The position numbers and the translations under genes were made by a program. Shown in pieces: positions 19,818 to 61,700 of a stretch of 64,000 nucleotides of DNA. Below the pieces are notes generated by a model. It ran no database searches and had not been told where the DNA came from. It worked only from the letters and a program-made list of their open reading frames with translations. Source of the stretch: Neoechinorhynchus agilis (taxonomy: Eukaryota; Animalia; Acanthocephala); the NCBI GenBank assembly GCA_051530055.1, contig CM121341.1:11138784-11202783 (forward strand). The letters are read 5' to 3'. Position 1 is the stretch's first letter; the number at the start of each line of letters is the position of its first letter.

Positions 19818-22414
19818 ATGCAGTCTATTCGAGAACTTGTGCGATCCATTCCTCCAATAACGCGAACATGGCTGTTTGGATCATTGTCACTCACTATTAT
19901 GGCACGAGCTGGTCTTGTGCGTTCAGATAGTCTGATTATCCTGACCACCAAAGCTTACAAATTTCAATGGCCTGAAATCTGGCGATTGGTGACGTCAGTC
20001 TTGCTCTTTCCAGCGAAATTGCAATACATTACACGCTTGAAGGGTTGCAGATCCTGGGGCGCTTATGAATACTTTTGCTACCCTTAGCAAATGCTCCTCT
20101 TTTTTCTCTATACCCAATGCAATCAATTAGAGCTGAAGGAATTTTCTAACTCTAGGCCGGATTTTGCCTACTGTATTACCATTTGCTGGCTCGTCAATGT
20201 TGCCATCGGTGTAGTGTTTCCTTATCCGGTAAGATTTTGTTTCGTAAGGTGCCAATGAAAATGTCCGTTTATCGGGAATTTATGATTCTAGGATCTTTTT
20301 TGTACTAAAAAGTCTTAGGCGAACGACGATCAGCCATTTTACTTTTTTGTTGTTATCGTAATCAAACTTTAAATATCCTTCGGGATGATAAAGTTAGAAT
20401 TGTGGTGAAGATACTTCTCCTCCCCGGTTAAGAGGTATTTCATTTTACACTAACTTAAGTCGTAAAAACGTTTAATCAATCACCCGGATGAGACGAGGCT
20501 TCCAATTTCGAAATATTTCTAGATTCAATAAAATACCGCTTATCCGGAGGTGGAGCGAGCGTATATTCACCACAATTCTAACCAAATATTAAAATCACCA
20601 GCATTGTTGCATAGAAATCTTTTTTCAATGCTAGGCTCGTGTTCAATGTTTTTAAATCGTTATTAATCTAGAAATCGGTCACACTAATCCCGAATGAAGC
20701 ATATTTTATTCAATTAAGAAATATTTCGTAAAAGGTAGCTTTATCTAAGCTTTTTTGTAAAGAATGACCCGGATGAGGCGAGGCTTCCACTTTCGAAATA
20801 TTTCTAAATTCAATAAAATATATCATCCCGAATTATTTTCATTTGATGCCCTCATTTTCTGTTAAGTTGAACATTTCATTAAGCCGGTATTCATAAGGTA
20901 TTGGCGATTTTTATGTGCTGTTTTTTTGCTCAGTTTGTCTGTGTACAATTGTTCAACTTTTGCAATGTCGAGATGAAATTTTTCACTATTATGCCGTTGT
21001 TTAATACGCATAAAGCCATTTTGACTTATGGTGAAGATAATCCCGGTTAAAAATCATTTTATTATTAGGAAATATTTCGGAAGAGGAAACCTCGCCTTAT
21101 CAATCATCTAAAAAAACGTTTTTGGTTATGGTTCGTTTTTATGTTTTGTCTAGTTGGCTCGGGTTGACAGATTCGCCACTTCCAACAAGGTTCGGGGACC
21201 GTGTTCCCTGCTCGTAAACCCTGCACTGTATCGTGTGTGTGTTCTATTGATTTTAACTTCGTCACTGGCAGGTAGTTTTACGCTAAAATTCGCCTTATTG
21301 CCCTTCATTTTATTGGGATAAGGCGAGGTTTCCTCTTTCGAAATAGTTCTAAATTCAATAAAATGATTTTTAAAAGGGGCGAGTAGAGTTGAGAGGTATT
21401 TTGATTGTCTGTGGAAAATCTTATGTAAGTATTTGGCGGGTAGTGGAAATGATCAAATTCTCCCTACGGATAAAAAATCTCTAGATATTTCGTGGCTTAG
21501 ATGATCGATGAGGCCTCCCTCTCTCGAAACATCTCAATGGAAATATTTTCTATCAGGAGGGTAGATTATGATAACCATATCGAGAGAAAATCCATCGGGA
21601 TGATAAATTTTAACGTGTGGTGAACATAATCCCGCTCACATAATTAAAAACTTACAAGCAATAATTGATAAGCCGAGCTTTCCTCTCTTTCCAAACTATT
21701 ACAAAACAATAAAATGATTTTTAACCTGGCGAGTATATCCACCACAAGTCAAAATTTACCATCCCGATGGATTTTCTCTCGATATAATAAAGCCATTATA
21801 GGTTTTATGAATTCCCTAAAACGAATTTAGTTCATAAACTGGCACCTTTTCATATCCACATTCATTAATCGAAACGTTATAAAAGTAGCTCCTTTTTGAA
21901 CAAATGCTTTCAAGTATGATCTACGTTTGCAGTCAAAAGAATCGCAATGCTGAAGTAAGTTTTTTATTCGGAATGAGGGTCAAAGCTGTTTATTTACCAT
22001 GGTTAATGACTGGTTTCAATTGGTTCGCGCACGGAAAGTAAGTCTAGTATGAAAAAACGAAGACTTCGAAAAACATTTAGTTTTCTTCCTTACTTATCTG
22101 GAATCTTGGCTGGACACGTCTATCACTATTTCGCCAATATATATCCGGTCAATAATCCAGGACGTCAACCACTTAAAACCCCACAACGATTGTAAGTGTG
22201 ATTGCATCATTAAAGGCGGCAGAAAACGATTTGGTTACATTCCGAGTTTAGTGCTGATTTCATTGAGACTTTGGTTCCAACAAATACACAACGAGCGCCT
22301 TTTGTGAGGTTAAATAATCAACGGCAGCATCTACGACCAGCAAGAAGCGGGCCTCAAACTCGTCAGGCAACGTTTAGGCCATTCTCAGGCGTAGGACATC
22401 GTCTGGATGATTGA
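19818..22414 (+). CDS. DERL1: Derlin-1, 5 coding exons
   Basis: RSIPPITRTW, EIWRLVT..FP, FFLYTQCNQLE...RPDF (20088-20228), exon 21889-22037 (VSFLFGMRVKAVYLPW), exon 22081-22191 (GILAGHVYHYF...KTPQ) and last exon 22252-22414 ending in the SHP-box-like FSGVGHRLDD*. The first intron boundary is unresolved. Confidence 0.9.
20394..21785. mobile_element. Cluster of nested or related MITE-foldback elements in the large Derlin intron
   Basis: TIR pairs at 20394-20581 (TTAGAATTGTGGTGAA), about 21020-21390 (GAGGAAACCTCGCCTTATC / GATAAGGCGAGGTTTCCTC) and 21577-21785 (ATATCGAGAGAAAATCCATCGGGATG). Confidence 0.75.
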
Positions 22415-28484: not shown

Positions 28485-31110
28485 ATGCCGCCACAACTTT
28501 CTACCACTACCACCAACCGGAATCAGGCGGCGACGGCGGCCTTCAATAGCCACTATCATCAGCCGAGCTCATACGCCTCAAACCGACCAGTCTGGTGCTA
28601 TGTAAACTCACCAAGCCAACTGGCAAGGAAGTACGCAAGCATTGCACCTGTTTGGTGCCATATTACTAAGGACGGAATGTTCATTCATCAAGGCCTAACG
28701 TCTGAACAGTCCGCAATAAACCAAGACAACTCAAGTCAAAGTATCAGTCTCAGTACCCTTCTGCTGCCACGAATTCCATTTCAAATAAAAAACAGCCACA
28801 AAATGAACCTGAACCTAGTATTAACAACGATCACAAGGTGGTGACTTCACCCACAGCCCCTTCTACGAATCGACAACCAAGTCCGATTTTATCCGCCGCT
28901 AGAAGACGGGCTAGGATTGACCATCTTAAAGAACTAGTTTTCAATACCGAAAACTTACCGGACACTACGTCACAAGTCAATCGGATTCCCATATCTTCTT
29001 CGGCCTACTTTCCATCAGCGGTCAATACGAACACAAACCACTCAGCAACAACTCTCCATCCGTCCGCTTCAACCTCTACCGTTCTGACTTCTACCGTTGT
29101 TCCGTCGTCCCAAAACACAACCATCACTGCTGCTACTGGTAACGGCACCTCGAGCTCGGCGCAAGCTGCTGCAAAGAGGAGAATCAGAAAATATTTGATG
29201 GCTAAAGGTGGTGGCAGTGGTGCTTCTACAAAGATACAATCGCCTGCATCCGGGTCGTTGATCGGTATCAGCGGTGGTCCACCGGGCAGTGGTAGTGCGT
29301 ACCATCTACATCACCTAACGGAACCAATGCTTTCATCTCTTCCCAGTCTGTCTGAAAAATACGGGCTAACCGGTGGTGGAAGCGGTATTTTATACGGCAC
29401 TGCTGGAAACAGGTGTGGATCTTGTTGCGCTCTAGTTTCTTACGTCACATTTTGCTTTGACCAGCGTATTTGACTCAAAAAATCATCATTTTCTATTTTT
29501 TTCTTTCTACAAGCTTGTCGTTTTTTCGTCTCAATAGCACGAACGCACCTTAACGTATCTTCAATTTAGTCGACGCCATTTACTGACCAGTGAAAGTTTC
29601 AGGAATGTTCCGAATGGAACCAGTAACCGGACGGGTGGATACGAGCATCACCACCACCAGCCGCATCAGCAGCAGCGTTACATAGGTGGCGCTTATTTCC
29701 AGAGTTCTCGAAAACTGCGTAAATCCCCTAATGGCCGTCATTCTTCTTCATCTCCAATTCCGCAGACAAAGAGTACTTACCGTCGTCAGATTCCGATTCC
29801 ATACCCTCGGAGAGATATTGGGCGCTTTCAACCGATCGATCTATCATCGTCTCCACGAGTCGCACAACCTCAAGTGCGGGATGATGAGAATGGACATTTG
29901 TTGTTTTCGCCCGGTGATCTTATTCAATCTCGATGTGAGTGTTAGTGTTTCTCTCTCTCGATGTATGCTCTGTTCGGTTCTAGTAACGTTTTTTATTTAG
30001 ATGAGATAAAACGGACACTGGGTGAAGGTACATTTGGTCGTGTTGTGGAAGTTCGGGAAAAGTACCAGTCTCCTTCAACAGCGCCGATGCCTCCAAAACG
30101 AATAGCTCTCAAGATTATTAAGAGTATATCAAAATACCGTGAAGCAGCTCGACTCGAGGTGAATGTGTTAAATAAACTTCAAGAGCTTGATCCACAAGGC
30201 AAATACCTGTGCATAAACATGCTCGACTGGTTCGACTACCACGGTCACGTGTGTATCGCTTTTGAGATGATGGGTCTTAGTGTTTTTGAATTCCTAAAAG
30301 ACAATAACTACATTCCATATTCTTTGAGCCAAGTAAGGCACGTCGCCTATCAGCTGTGCCATGCTGTGAATTTTCTTCATGATAACCGTTTAACACATAC
30401 TGACCTAAAACCTGAAAATATCCTTTTTGTCGATTCCAGCTACGATACGGTCTACAACAGTCGCCGAAGACGAGACGAACCGGGTGGTTCGAAGGACTGA
30501 CATAAAACTAATTGATTTTGGATCGGCTACTTTTGATTGGGAACATCACAGCACTGTAGTGAGCACAAGGCACTATCGCGCACCGGAGGTCATCCTTGAA
30601 CTCGGATGGTCTCAACCCTGCGATGTGTGGAGTGTTGGTTGTATTATTTTTGAACTTTATGTCGGTTATACTCTCTTTCAAACCCACGAAAATCGAGAAC
30701 ATCTTGCTATGATGGAACGAATCCTAGGGAAAATCCCATATAGAATGATCAAAGCCACAAGACGAACCAAATATTTCTCAAGGGGGGAACTAGATTGGGA
30801 CGAACGATCAGCTGCTGGTCGATATGTACGAGAAAATTGCAAACCATTGAAAAGGTACATTCTTGAAGATAAACACGAACACGTTCTTCTTTTCGATCTT
30901 ATCGCAAGAATGCTTGAGTATACTCCACAGGACCGAATAAACCTCACAGATGCTCTTAAGCACGAATTCTTCGATGACCTGCGGCCTGAACATAGATTCG
31001 AACCAGCAAGTACCCGTCGAAACGAGCCTCACAATAGCGGAACCGTTAATGCTACAAATAATGACGATGGCACAGACACAAGATTGTCCATGGAAGACCG
31101 AAGCAATTGA
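28485..31110 (+). CDS. CLK: CLK/Doa (LAMMER family) dual-specificity kinase with a long low-complexity N-terminus
   Basis: Proposed exons 28485-29412, 29570-29934 and 30001-31110. [17 protein letters not shown]|[40 protein letters not shown], and the signature [11 protein letters not shown]. One-base frameshifts near 28757 and 30481. Confidence 0.92.
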
Positions 31111-54316: not shown

Positions 54317-54910
54317 TTCGAACCTCGTCGGGTTCATCATCAGTTTGTTAATATTAAAGGCGTTTAAGACCATCAACTTAATTTATCTGGAATTATTTTG
54401 TTTCCAAATGTCGATATGTGAGGTACCGGAGTATATGATTAGGATTATTGTTTAGGTCTTTACCCGTTAGATAATTTTTTATTAAAGACGTTTCGAACAT
54501 CGTCGGGTTCATCATCAGTTTGTTATAAAAATGCGTTTAAGACCATCAAATTCATTTATCTGAATTTATTTTGTTTACAAATGTCGATATGTGAGGAGGT
54601 ACCGGAGTATATGATTAGGATTATTGTTTAGGTATTCACCCGTTAGATAATTTTTTATTAAAGACGTTTCGAACATCGTCGTGTTCATCATCAGTTTGTT
54701 ATAAAAAAGCGTTTAAAACCATCAATCTAATTTATCTGCAATTATTTTGTTTCAAAATGTCGATATGTGAGGAGGTACCGGAGTATATGATTAGAATTAT
54801 TGTTTAGGTCTTTACCCGTTAAATAATTTTTATTAAAGACGTTTTGAACATCATCGGGCATAAAAATATTTACCGGGTAAAGACCTAAATAATAATCCTA
54901 TTTTGTTTCC
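54317..54910. repeat. About 175-bp tandem array (3 full copies) ending in an inverted partial copy
   Basis: TTCGAAC.TCGTCG.GTTCATCATCAG at 54317, 54492 and 54668. Inverted piece TTTACCGGGTAAAGACCTAAATAATAATCCTA at about 54870-54900. Confidence 0.92.
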
Positions 54911-55361
54911 ATTTATTTCAAAATAGTTTATATGTTTGTAATCAAAATTAAACTCGAGCAATGACGTTAAAGTTTTAACCATGGTTAATTTTTGGCATAT
55001 GTAATTTTTGCTTCGGTAATCCAACATAGACTTCAACCACGTTGTCGTTATTTTTAAACCGAAGTAAAAATAAGCGATAATATACTTTACTTGTAAAATA
55101 TTTCAGTGATAATGTAAATCAACATATTTTAAAGAATTTATTAGAAACACGGATTAAGATTAAAAAAGAAACTCAGAGCAAATATACGCGAGTAAATCAT
55201 AAGCAGCGTAATTGAAATGCATGGGAATATTAATTCAGGTGTAAATGAAGTATAGTAAAACATAAACGAGAACGCCATTCGCTGCATTAACCGTTAAATT
55301 TACCGAATGAAAATTTGATTTAACTATGGGAAAACACATATCACAGAGTGACTCGGAGATC

Positions 55362-56518
55362 TCAAACAATTTTTTCAAGATCATTTTTGATGGCAGTTAC
55401 GACTATTTCCGCGTCGATTAAAGTGTCTGTAAGATATCCTTTTGGACCGCGACACGCCCATCCTGCAACGTATAAACCAGGTTCGATCCTTTGATCTTTG
55501 TCAATATTGTATCCTTCCTCTCCGGTGTGAATTAAAGAATTGCTTTTGTAACCAAAGCATGCAATACTAAGATCTGTTTTAACGCTAAAAACTTGATCCT
55601 TACATTTATCTAGGCAATGTATCGCTTTAACTTTTCCTTTTTTATCGGGTACTAAATCCAACGGACTGTGGAGGAATAAAAACTTTAGCCGCTTGGATCC
55701 TTGATTACGCTGGAGGGCATTGTTAAACAATTCATAGAACCTAAGAATCTTTCGAGTAGATTTATATTTTTCATGTGGTTCGGTTAGATTTGAGACAGAT
55801 ACAGAAAGGTCAGGAAGGTTTAACAAGTGCCTTAATTGTTTCACATTGAACGCCGCTTCATACAAAGCTCCCCGACCAATAATCGTAATCTCAGGGTTAT
55901 GACGCCGGTGTAATCTTTTGGTTTTCATAAAACAAAACGAAAGTCAAAAGTTAAATTCTCTTTAATCATTGGGTTCACTTTCTGAGATTCTGGTTTAAAA
56001 TCCTCGCCGTTTTTTAAAAGTATTCTCGCCACATCCATCGCTACGTCTCCAATACCTACAATACTGATATTTTTTACGCTTTCATCAAAGTTTATTTCGG
56101 GGTTCTCGGAAGCGCTATCCCAACTATTATACCAATTAGCGATTTGAACACCAGTAAAACAATTTTTAAATCGTGTGAATTGCTTAGAGACTTCGCTTAA
56201 AGCTCCCGCTCCATGACTAAGAATTACTGCTTGATGGGCACGCCTGATATCATTTATAGAGACATCGCGACCTACTTCCACTCCGCATCTCATATTTACT
56301 CTTTCATTCATTAAGACTTTTTCCTCGAGTGAAACCATTGCCTTCTTCATGTCGTCGTGATCAGGAGCGACACCGTATCGTAGAAGTCCAAATGGAGCAG
56401 TAGCACGTTCGAAGATATTCAATTTAACTGAAGGAAATACCGCAAGTAGCTTCTTAGCGGTGTACAGCCCTGATGGACCGGCGCCGATAATTGCTACTCG
56501 TCTCAGTTGTTCTATCAT
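55362..56518 (-). CDS. FDXR: NADPH:adrenodoxin (ferredoxin) oxidoreductase
   Basis: RVAIIGAGPSG, PFGLLRYGVAPDH, IVGIGDVAMDVARIL, IIGRG and LYVAGW..RGPKG. Two overlapping ORFs, best joined by a 44-nt intron at 55915-55958. Confidence 0.9.
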
Positions 56519-57409
56519 CTAAGAAAAACTGCCTTGTAATCAATGTCTAAAATGGAAAGCGCGAACTAGTCAAGCTTAAAAACGTTAGAATGTCTCAACG
56601 CCTCCATGAACCACAAAGCAGTGGGTAAAAAATTGCAGAGATTCAATGAGCTAAATTTAGCTTTGATCCGTTTTAGTGGAAATTATGAAGTAAGATTTAA
56701 AAAAATAAAGCACATTTTAAAGTTGTTGATTTTCAAACTAAGCTATAATCGATATGATTTTTGCAATCTAATAATTACTCGTGCACTTTAGCCCTTCAAA
56801 TTATGAGTGTGGAAGAGAATATCGAACAAAAATTGTCATTAAGAATCTTAAAACTTTTGGTGTTTTCTTGCTATATTAGATCGTTCGATTGACTGCAAAT
56901 TATCACCAGTTCATCGACAATGAATTTTGGAATATAACGTCAGGAATGAACTTTTGTTGACTATAAACGCCCACATTTTGCTTGGTAAATGACGAGCCTT
57001 CTTCTATGAAACCGACTATACGCCCTCGTACTTTGAATCACTTTTCATTCTCCTTCCTGGCGAATAATATTCCCATCCGTGGACATTTACTTTTAAATGA
57101 GTTTGATATTCCACTCATGCATGATTTTGATAGAGTTGTGGCATTTCTTGTGAAACTGAATAAATACTTTAAAGTGTTGATGCAATAGGGGAGATGCACG
57201 GTGAATTGAGTGAAAATCTCTTATTTTGAATTGGATTCGCTCACATAAGCTGCCATTACCTAAGATTCCATATCATTGACCAAATTTCCGACCATATCCG
57301 ATTTTTATGTCAAAAATAACAGAAGTCGCATACAAAATGTAGGGAAAATTACCGGATTAAATGTATAGAGATATGTAATATTGGTGATCATAATCCCCGC
57401 AGGATAAAA

Positions 57410-57655
57410 CATATTTTGACTTGTGGTGAAGATAATCCCGGTTAAAAATCATTTTATTGTTCTGAAATACGAAATCACATATTTAAACACTTACAAGCAA
57501 TGATAGATAAAGGGAGGTTTCCTCTTTCGAAATATTTAGTGGCGAGTATCTTCACCACAAGTCAAAATTTACCATCCCGATGCATTTTCTCTCGATATGA
57601 AAAACATATTTTATTGTATTGAGAGATGTTTTGAAAGAGGAAGCCTCGCCTCATC
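57410..57655. mobile_element. Member of the TGTGGTGAAG MITE/foldback family
   Basis: TTTTGACTTGTGGTGAAGATA...TATCTTCACCACAAGTCAAAA, then TTTACCATCCCGATGCATTTTCTCTCGATAT, shared with 21577-21785. Confidence 0.7.
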
Positions 57656-58747: not shown

Positions 58748-61700
58748 ATGGACAAAGAAGACTGCGGAAAAATCAAGTTTGATGTGCTTTGTGCGATTTT
58801 AGAAAAATGCAGTTCACATAAAGGAAAACAAGCCAAGATGCAAATCCTAATTGATTTTATGAAAAAACTTAGACCACTTGCGAAAATCCAACATTCGAAC
58901 TTTTATCAGTTTGTTTTTGACGGGTGGATTTTCGGTTCGGAAAGAGCAAAAGTCCTTCTGTCAGCTAAGACTTTTAGTGCCTTCAGTTGATCGTCGCAGT
59001 TTCGGTATTGGTCAGAAAACCTTGGGTCGTCTCATTATTACAACACTTGGTCTGAATTTAAAGAATAGTGAGGATGCGAAGGCATTAATGTCTAATGGAA
59101 ATGAAAGTCACTTGATTAAAGGAAGCAGTAGCGATTTCGTGGAGTTGGCTGCGTTGATAATGAGCCGAAGATTGTCTATGATATCTGGACATGTACTCAT
59201 CGAACGGGTCAATGAGTTTTTGAACGACATATCAACATCCAGCGATAAGTCATCTGACTTTTCCCAACTACTAAATATGCCCTTGAAGTTGGTCCACATA
59301 AAATGGCTTTTCCGAATTATTTTAAAGGAGGTGGATGTCGGGGTTGGCTTAAGTGATCCATCATTACTCCGGTGCATTCATCCGGATATCGAGAAAGTTC
59401 TTAAAACGAAAGCAAGCTTGCAACACGCGATTGAAGTCGTATTTTGTAGTGGAAACGATGAGGCTAAAGATAAGATTCAATTGTTTTTACCTTTGAGACC
59501 AATGCTTTCACAAAGACTGAATGGCAAGGACTTGGAAAGTAAATTGGCAGAATATGGGGCTAAACCGTTGATTATTCAATTAAAACTCGACGGAGAAAGA
59601 GTACAAGTTCATTACAAAGGAAAAAAGATTATGTATATTTCTAGAGGCGGATTCGATTATACGGAATCATATACGTCTAGCATGAATCATGATTGGATGG
59701 CGGCGGTTGTTCCGACTGCTGTTGATTTTATTTTACAGATGGAATGGAGTTTTCAATTTGGTAGAACGATTGAGGATGAAAGTTTTATTAGTGAGGGGGG
59801 ATAGTTACCTATTGCCGCATTATTTGCCAGATATTTATGGCACATTTTGATGTGTTGGATTATTGTCTTCGAGGGAAAAGATACTTTATTTTGGTTGTTT
59901 TCCGATATTTCAAAGGATAATTCCGACATTATCAAGGTTTATCATAGTTAAAATATTGAGAAATCATAAAAAATCATTGTTTTCGTTAACGAACTTTCAT
60001 TGCGAAAAAACTGCACAACTTTCTTTACTATTTCTCAATACTTTAACAATGGCGAACCTTGATAATGTCGAAATTATCCACCTGCTAAACTCAGTAATTA
60101 AATTATAAAGGGATACTATGATGATATTTGACAAGTTTTGTAATAATTTTTTATCAAAAATATTATGTATTCTCGATGTAATTAACCTCTCAAAATTTTA
60201 AAACTACCAACCTCGATTTTGCCTTTGATAGAACAACTGGGGATGAAAGTTTTATTAGTGGGTGTTAGTTACCTATTGTCGTAAAGTTCGATGATTGCTT
60301 TATGTGCCAGATATTTATGGCACATTTTTATGAACAAAAATATCTATAGAACTGGTTTACGGTGGAAACATACATGAGAAACTCTATACTTCCTGTAGAA
60401 TTTTAGGCCTCGAGCCGGATTTAAGAAAGTTTACCTCCTAATATCAGTATTTAAATTATAAATGAATGCTTTAATGAAAGCTCTATACTATAGACGGAGA
60501 AATGATGATATTTGACAAGTCCTGTAATAAACTTTTATCAAAAGGATCATGTGTTCTCGACGTAAAGAACCTCTCAAAATCTTCAAATTACCAACCTCGA
60601 TTTTGCGCTTTCGATATAATTTATCTTAATGGTCGCAACCTATGCTATTTACCATTTATCCAAAGGTCCAAGATATTAAAAGAGACGATCTGTTCGTATC
60701 AATCGATCTATGTGTTGCCCGATATTGCCATAGTTGAAAATGACACCACTGGTGTTGACAAGATACGATCAATTTTAAATGAAAAGACGAACGAAAAAGA
60801 AGAAGGAATCATTTTGAAAGTAAGTGATTCAGCCTATGTACCGAACGGCCGAGAACGATGTGGATGGTTCAAATTAAAACCTGATTATGTAGAAGGTCTT
60901 GCAGATGATCTTGATCTTTTAGTGGTTGGAGCAAACTATGGTGCTAAGCGAGGACGAAATACCGGTATATTTCATTCATTTGGCGTTGCAATAAAGGATG
61001 ATGAGAAATCTCTATTTCGATTAATTGGGCATGTTTCATCTGGATTTTCGAATGCTGACATTGAACAGCTAAAGGAAAACGTATTCACAGCCGAGAAAGT
61101 GTGTCGGGATGTTCCGGGACATTGGCTTGTGTTAGACAGGCAGTAACTCGGACATTTCTTGTTTTAAGGGACAGGTCGGGCTTCGAATTTCAAAAGGCAC
61201 GAAATTGTCAAAAACTGCGATTTTCTGTCACATTTTTCATCGCTCGGATTATAGGGTATAAATTAAAATATCAACTTAATGTAATTACCACTTCGAAAAA
61301 ATCTGTGCTCAAAATCACTTCTTTTCAGAAAAAAATGTATATTGAGTACTTCAATTGTATTTGTATGCAAAACTCTTTTGAATGTAAAGGTGGGCTAGAT
61401 GTTTTTATAGTAACTGTTTCCCTTAATTGTCTTGGAAGTTTTTTAAAAACAACAAATGCCCAATCGGAAAGATGTGATATTTACGCGTGTGAGCCACAGG
61501 ATTGTAAAGTTGGGACGATTCGTTCAGCTGAAGTTAGCTTAGATGGTGCAGGTAGATTCGGATTAAGGTTTCCTCGCTTGATTATACTGCGAACAAAAGA
61601 CGAGAAAAATTACGAAGGAGTATGTTCGCAACTGGAAATGAGTAGGATAGCTCGGCCTTTGACTGGATGCGGAGAGCAGCCCAAGAAAAGAGAAATAGGT

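Follow-up and report, generated by a model that had tools for sequence, protein, structure and literature searches.

The locus

The window analysed here comprises 64,000 nt of contig CM121341.1 (assembly GCA_051530055.1) of the acanthocephalan Neoechinorhynchus agilis. An FDXR-like gene on its minus strand is divided between two open reading frames, ORF1 and ORF2, and is neighboured by a DNA-ligase-IV-like gene on the plus strand (Table 1). An earlier note, made from the sequence alone, had described the two FDXR-like ORFs as offset by 2 in frame, as both the ORF listing and a frame check agree.

The exons were searched separately, the joined protein being translated locally only, for frame continuity. 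Searched alone, the exon with ORF1 matched residues 4-167 of bovine adrenodoxin reductase (1cjc; E 6e-28) and also aligned with FprA of M. tuberculosis (1lqt). The exon with ORF2, likewise searched alone, matched residues 191-219 and 359-394 of 1cjc, and this match includes the C-terminal GW..RGP.G motif (...GLYVAGWACRGPKG...). Together with the N-terminal GxGxxG FAD fold and a second nucleotide-binding motif, all expected FDXR features are present and are collinear with the solved FDXR structure. Pfam returned only sub-threshold matches on ORF1, to the Rossmann-type families Pyr_redox_2 and NAD_binding. Judged by these sequence features, the host gene is an FDXR-type reductase, and since its two ORFs are out of frame, something between them must be removed.

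In the public record of CM121341.1 only the 188-aa ORF2 is called as a gene (L001 3001-3567), without a Pfam match, so that an essential mitochondrial enzyme, FDXR, seems to be broken or missing. Gene finders based on GT-AG borders are unable to model the FDXR-like gene. An exact-protein look-up found no record for the 197 aa of ORF1 and, for ORF2, only the source assembly GCA_051530055.1; when close relatives were sought by a word search with ORF1, only six distant short matches (33-48% identity) came up. The spliced product, only 371 aa long, stops about 65 residues short of the C-terminus of bovine adrenodoxin reductase. Just downstream of the 3' end of the gene, three tandem ORF-like repeats (...LIKNYLTGKDLNNNPNHILRYL...) occupy positions 54393-54861 of the minus strand.

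Table 1. Features of the FDXR-like gene and introns of the neighbouring ligase-like gene (positions in the window).
Feature	Position	Strand	Remarks
FDXR-like coding sequence	56518..55362	minus	
ORF1	56518..55925	minus	197 aa
ORF2	55928..55362	minus	188 aa
FDXR exon 1 in mRNA	55952..56546	minus	contig pieces 55952-56546 in X2-X4, up to 56940 in X1
FDXR start codon	56518-56516	minus	
FDXR 41-nt intron	55911..55951	minus	RNA skip; equivalent placements up to 55914-55954
TTA direct repeat, upstream copy	55952..55954	minus	5' boundary
TTA direct repeat, downstream copy	55911..55913	minus	3' boundary
Outer stem, 5' arm CUUUUG	55945..55950	minus	start 1-4 nt into the intron, varying with register
Outer stem, 3' arm CAAAAG	55915..55920	minus	predicted fold
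Inner stem, 5' arm UUUCGU	55937..55942	minus	predicted fold
Inner stem, 3' arm AUGAAA	55923..55928	minus	predicted fold
FDXR exon 2 in mRNA	55299..55910	minus	contigs terminate at 55299-55328
FDXR stop codon	55364-55362	minus	
Ligase intron 1	58914..58965 (or 58915-58966)	plus	52 nt, non-GT-AG, RNA-confirmed
Ligase intron 2	59734..60490	plus	757 nt, TA at each border, non-GT-AG

A 41-nt segment skipped in the mRNA

Four public RNA runs of one study (X1-X4), which hold 90-93% of the words of the FDXR gene, were available as assembled contigs, a form of data that drops rare variants, rather than as raw reads. These sets behave as transcriptomes, with zero depth between genes and contigs of 1.2-2.8 kb that end in Illumina adaptor; a common 5' leader and the skipping of 757 nt in the next gene give them the same character. 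Apart from the differences described here, X1-X4 are 100% identical across 1.2-2.7 kb.

In all four runs, a single contig at a depth of 64-174 joins position 55952 directly to 55910, with 0 mismatches and no indels, thereby skipping the 41 nt from 55911 to 55951. Placements of the cut shifted by as much as 3 nt are equivalent ('both' = 3). Depth over the 41 nt is zero, and the bin depth amounts to 159/200 of that of the flanks; no contig therefore retains the segment. The earlier idea that an intron-sized, non-canonical intervening sequence interrupts FDXR is thus borne out by the skip, which has no canonical ends, and a sequencing indel as the cause of the frame break, an option that the earlier note had left to be checked, is ruled out together with the model of one continuous frame, as the contigs match the genome without indels and the skip is exactly 41 nt.

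The joint creates one open frame of 371 codons (...KVNPMIKENL|HRRHNPEITIIGR...), and 25 residues span the joint, compared with 23 in bovine adrenodoxin reductase. The contigs terminate 35-60 nt beyond the stop codon, and the 41-nt intron is therefore the sole intron of the FDXR gene. The break in this gene is thus a real intron, of 41 nt, that lacks normal splice signals.

The FDXR mRNA is also trans-spliced. Contigs from X2-X4 carry 23-24 extra bases, ending in ...ATATTTAAAAACTTACAAGCA, just 5' of position 56546, immediately upstream of which the genome has TTTTAG, an acceptor placed 28 nt before the ATG on the minus strand. The X1 contig, unlike those of X2-X4, runs unspliced to 56940. Because this trans-splice acceptor is a normal TTTTAG, recognition of AG has not been generally lost.

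Two copies of the leader occur in the window, at 57479-57499 and at 21640-21660 (plus strand), with one mismatch each, where 0.01 would be expected by chance. Each copy is enclosed by the two arms of a foldback repeat (57413-57449/57532-57568 and 21577-21631/21731-21785, respectively) and is directly followed by AT, not GT. A scan of the window with Rfam for snRNA or SL RNA found nothing. A peak of RNA depth at 57401-57600 surrounds the first of these copies.

Anatomy of the FDXR intron

Read on the gene strand, the ends of the intron are AC..TA, AA..TT, TA..AT or TT..GA in its four equivalent registers, none of which has GT-AG, GC-AG, AT-AC or GA-AG ends. This ambiguity of register arises because a TTA direct repeat is present at both borders; by chance alone, a few percent of cases should show a boundary repeat of 3 nt. 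The 3' end (...GAAAACCAAAAGATTA) is purine-rich and lacks a pyrimidine tract; in no register does it terminate in AG. Within this U-rich intron, UUGAC is a possible branch site.

The 41-mer is predicted to fold end to end into a hairpin of 12 bp, made of two 6-bp stems, with a minimum free energy of -8.7 kcal/mol; this structure accounts for 86% of the ensemble, its z is -2.96, and among 200 dinucleotide shuffles 2 reach an equally stable fold. By these computed values the statistic may be called moderate and the predicted hairpin modest. The outer CUUUUG/CAAAAG stem begins 1-4 nt from either cut. The perfect terminal stem thus has 6 bp, or 9 with a bulge, as the flanking UAA and UUA can, judging from their complementarity, lengthen the stem if one A bulges out. 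A blastn-short search found no second copy of the 41-mer in the 64-kb window.

Two further introns in the neighbouring ligase-like gene

The two introns of the ligase-like gene were also seen as exact skips in RNA. For intron 1, the joint 58913->58966 was found in X2-X4 ('both' = 1, 0 mismatches), giving the product ...TTTG|TAAG... and keeping the frame (...FYQFVRLLVP...). An in-frame GT..AG pair at 58913-58964, one base off this intron, is not used in the RNA. The whole intron is predicted to form a hairpin (-21.1 kcal/mol, z -4.39), and when it is folded with its flanks, a 5-bp exon-exon helix is predicted, with both cuts in one internal loop. For intron 2, the joint 59733->60491 was found in X1-X4 ('both' = 2); its possible registers are TA..TA, AC..AT and CA..TA, and its removal restores the ligase motif ...DFILDGEMM.... 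The pairing of its ends is marginal (p about 0.04). Contigs from inside intron 2, among them 60072-60239 and 60082-60304, have a depth of 2-6 and agree with the genome throughout (0 mismatches), and this intron sequence therefore exists in the animals sampled for RNA.

All three introns seen in this 6-kb stretch are non-GT-AG, and they have no end dinucleotides in common. The excised pieces are alike in that their ends, or stretches near the ends, pair, and in having short repeats at the boundaries. The distance from stem to cut follows no fixed rule among the three introns, the sums of the offsets being 5, 4 and 18.

Ligase intron 2 also carries internal direct and inverted repeats, as well as a decayed copy of the start of the downstream exon (60118-60222 against 60502-60606, 87% over 105 nt), as if the intron-exon border had been duplicated locally. 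In two of the three introns, the FDXR intron (55945-55951) and ligase intron 1 (58915-58921), a heptamer, TTTTGAC, is found 1-3 nt inside the 5' cut, a suggestive but post hoc observation. It is also found in a foldback-repeat arm (57415-57421), and both strands of the window together contain it 23 times.

Comparison with known intron systems

In Oikopleura, GA-AG and GG-AG introns have a non-GT donor at a fixed position and keep the AG acceptor. Like the FDXR intron, these are short, come from an animal and have a donor other than GT, but the FDXR RNA shows neither the combination of a GA 5' end with an AG 3' end nor the junction that such ends would give. The internal eliminated sequences of Paramecium are short, TA-flanked segments with inverted ends that are cut exactly from DNA, leaving one TA. 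The segments described here are likewise TA-flanked, have inverted ends and interrupt coding sequence, whereas their removal is known from RNA alone.

Three features of hairpin-closed nonconventional introns, namely exact removal from mRNA at non-canonical borders, ends that pair and a short direct repeat overlapping both borders, are present in the FDXR intron. In the euglenids Euglena gracilis and E. agilis, nonconventional introns have non-GT-AG borders, no pyrimidine tract and a wide range of lengths; base pairing near their ends joins the borders, and repeats resembling target-site duplications occur at the junctions (PMC11282704, PMC12501133). The FDXR intron has the same non-GT-AG borders, paired ends and duplication-like repeat, and also lacks a pyrimidine tract; the introns seen here likewise differ widely in length, from 41 to 757 nt. 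The Euglena signature 5'-N3CDG ... CHGN5-6|R-3' (PMC12501133), however, is absent from every register of the FDXR intron, which has no C-D-G at +4..+6, and the host here is an animal.

Non-canonical introner elements of the dinoflagellate Amoebophrya have inverted repeats at both intron ends and direct repeats of 3-5 nt over the exon/intron borders, with no fixed end dinucleotide and a border that is ambiguous within the repeat; they form multi-copy families with inverted repeats of 8-20 nt (PMC7789003). Inverted ends, a direct repeat at the border and an ambiguous cut position are shared by the FDXR intron, but its perfect terminal stem has only the 6 bp noted above, and the element is single within the 64-kb window. 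In the tunicate Fritillaria borealis, most introns depart from GT-AG; they are thought to derive from MITEs, prefer AG-AC and AG-AT ends, and the spliceosome has been implicated in their removal (PMC11282704, PMC13326754). Both are animal lineages with non-GT-AG introns, but the ends here differ between introns, and the likeness is looser than those to euglenids and Amoebophrya. In literature searches, no paper came up on non-canonical introns of Acanthocephala or of this genome.

Proposed removal and alternative explanations

It is probable that FDXR contains a single 41-nt, hairpin-closed, non-GT-AG 'nonconventional' intron, with borders marked by structure and repeat, which is likely a transposon remnant removed from RNA. 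In the pre-mRNA, the element would fold on itself through the CUUUUG/CAAAAG stem and the inner 6-bp stem, drawing both borders together. The RNA would then be cut and rejoined at TTA, of which each border has a copy, and a single TTA with an intact 371-codon frame would remain. Structure and a repeat resembling a target-site duplication, rather than GT and AG, would set the borders. The paired ends would act as the recognition signal. In origin, the element is most likely what remains of a small transposon with inverted repeats, which the cell takes out at the level of RNA; a modified spliceosome or some other machinery could act as the enzyme. All three introns may descend from small inverted-repeat transposons: the TTA repeat would fit a 3-bp TWA duplication, and the TA repeat a duplication of the Tc1/mariner type.

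Two models with other splice sites restore the frame of FDXR on paper. The earlier note had proposed a GA-AG intron of 44 nt, and deleting 55915-55958 does indeed yield ...MIKELHRRHNPEITIIG with the frame restored and good spacing. As a spliceosomal intron at 55958..55915, this model now retains next to no probability: the RNA joint is 55952|55910, not 55959|55914, in all four runs, the length removed is 41 nt, not 44, and the four transcript contigs contain positions 55952-55958, giving ...KENLHRR... and not ...KELHRR... at the joint, while positions 55911-55914 lie within or beside the repeat. The statement that the only GT-AG option would delete about 18 residues was mistaken, as a 44-nt GT..AG pair at 55933..55890 restores the frame with equally good spacing; this pair is nevertheless ruled out, its bases 55890-55910 being contained in the transcripts. 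An 89-nt GT-AG pair at 55978..55890 fails likewise, with its bases present in the transcripts. That the upstream GT is unused holds true, the transcript joint being elsewhere. The 41 nt are thus exactly absent from the mRNA of four samples, and the nearby GT..AG and GA..AG pairs are not used. The hint of a relaxed 5' splice site combined with a normal AG acceptor does not fit either, as the 3' end is not AG and usable GT..AG pairs are ignored in both FDXR and the ligase-like gene.

An ordinary U2 spliceosome with relaxed site choice might also remove the 41 nt, the hairpin and the repeat being then relics of a transposon. The non-GT-AG introns of Fritillaria have been attributed to the U2 spliceosome (PMC11282704, PMC13326754), and the U-richness of the FDXR intron, with UUGAC as its possible branch site, would suit such a mechanism. 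This explanation appears unlikely, however, given that no end dinucleotides are common to the three RNA-confirmed introns, that the AG-AC and AG-AT ends preferred in Fritillaria are absent from all three, and that in-frame GT..AG pairs were passed over twice; moreover, the purine-rich 3' end without pyrimidine tract or AG contrasts with the canonical TTTTAG trans-splice acceptor of the same mRNA. Still less probable, to a degree that makes it a distant alternative, is that the transcribed DNA itself lacks the 41 nt, whether as a private insertion polymorphism, an assembly artefact or a ciliate-like, TA-bounded somatic excision. The TA/TTA borders and inverted ends do recall those of DNA transposons or of the eliminated sequences of Paramecium, and the 41 nt are retained in no contig. 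Against this, FDXR is a single-copy gene, whose frame the insert disrupts, and three inserts in two adjacent genes would be needed, all private to one animal, when the four RNA samples are otherwise identical; in addition, the RNA runs contain contigs from within the 757-nt ligase intron, which speaks against a simple insertion polymorphism. Removal from RNA rather than from DNA is the reading that we infer.

Exact removal of a 41-nt hairpin that lacks splice-site dinucleotides, with usable GT..AG pairs ignored, points to recognition of intron borders by RNA structure in a metazoan, a mode for which most documentation so far comes from euglenids and from a parasitic dinoflagellate. With an animal whose genome and RNA data are public, the question of border recognition would become testable. 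The TTA and TA repeats, along with the inverted ends, are consistent with the view that a genome with such a pathway can put up with small transposons inserted into its coding sequence. A broader and more tentative possibility, which we regard as somewhat short of an even prospect, is that this animal has a second pathway of intron removal, similar to that of euglenids, guided by structure, independent of GT/AG and possibly of the spliceosome, that acts on tiny TA/TTA-flanked hairpins in essential genes such as FDXR and overrides adjacent in-frame GT..AG pairs.

Other sites in the window

Two additional coding regions of the window have unusual breaks. In a Derlin gene (20010-20100, plus strand), exon 1 matches Derlin-1 up to ...LLFPA, and a second coding piece, in the same frame after a stop-containing stretch, has no significant match; a candidate removal of 66 nt, with a boundary repeat of 4 nt, can be proposed from the sequence. 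In a gene for a CLK-like kinase (30460-30500, plus strand), two ORFs overlap with a frame change of +1 within about 10 nt (...YNSRRRRDE / ...), which leaves no room for an intron; the change is possibly a 1-nt assembly indel or a real frameshift.
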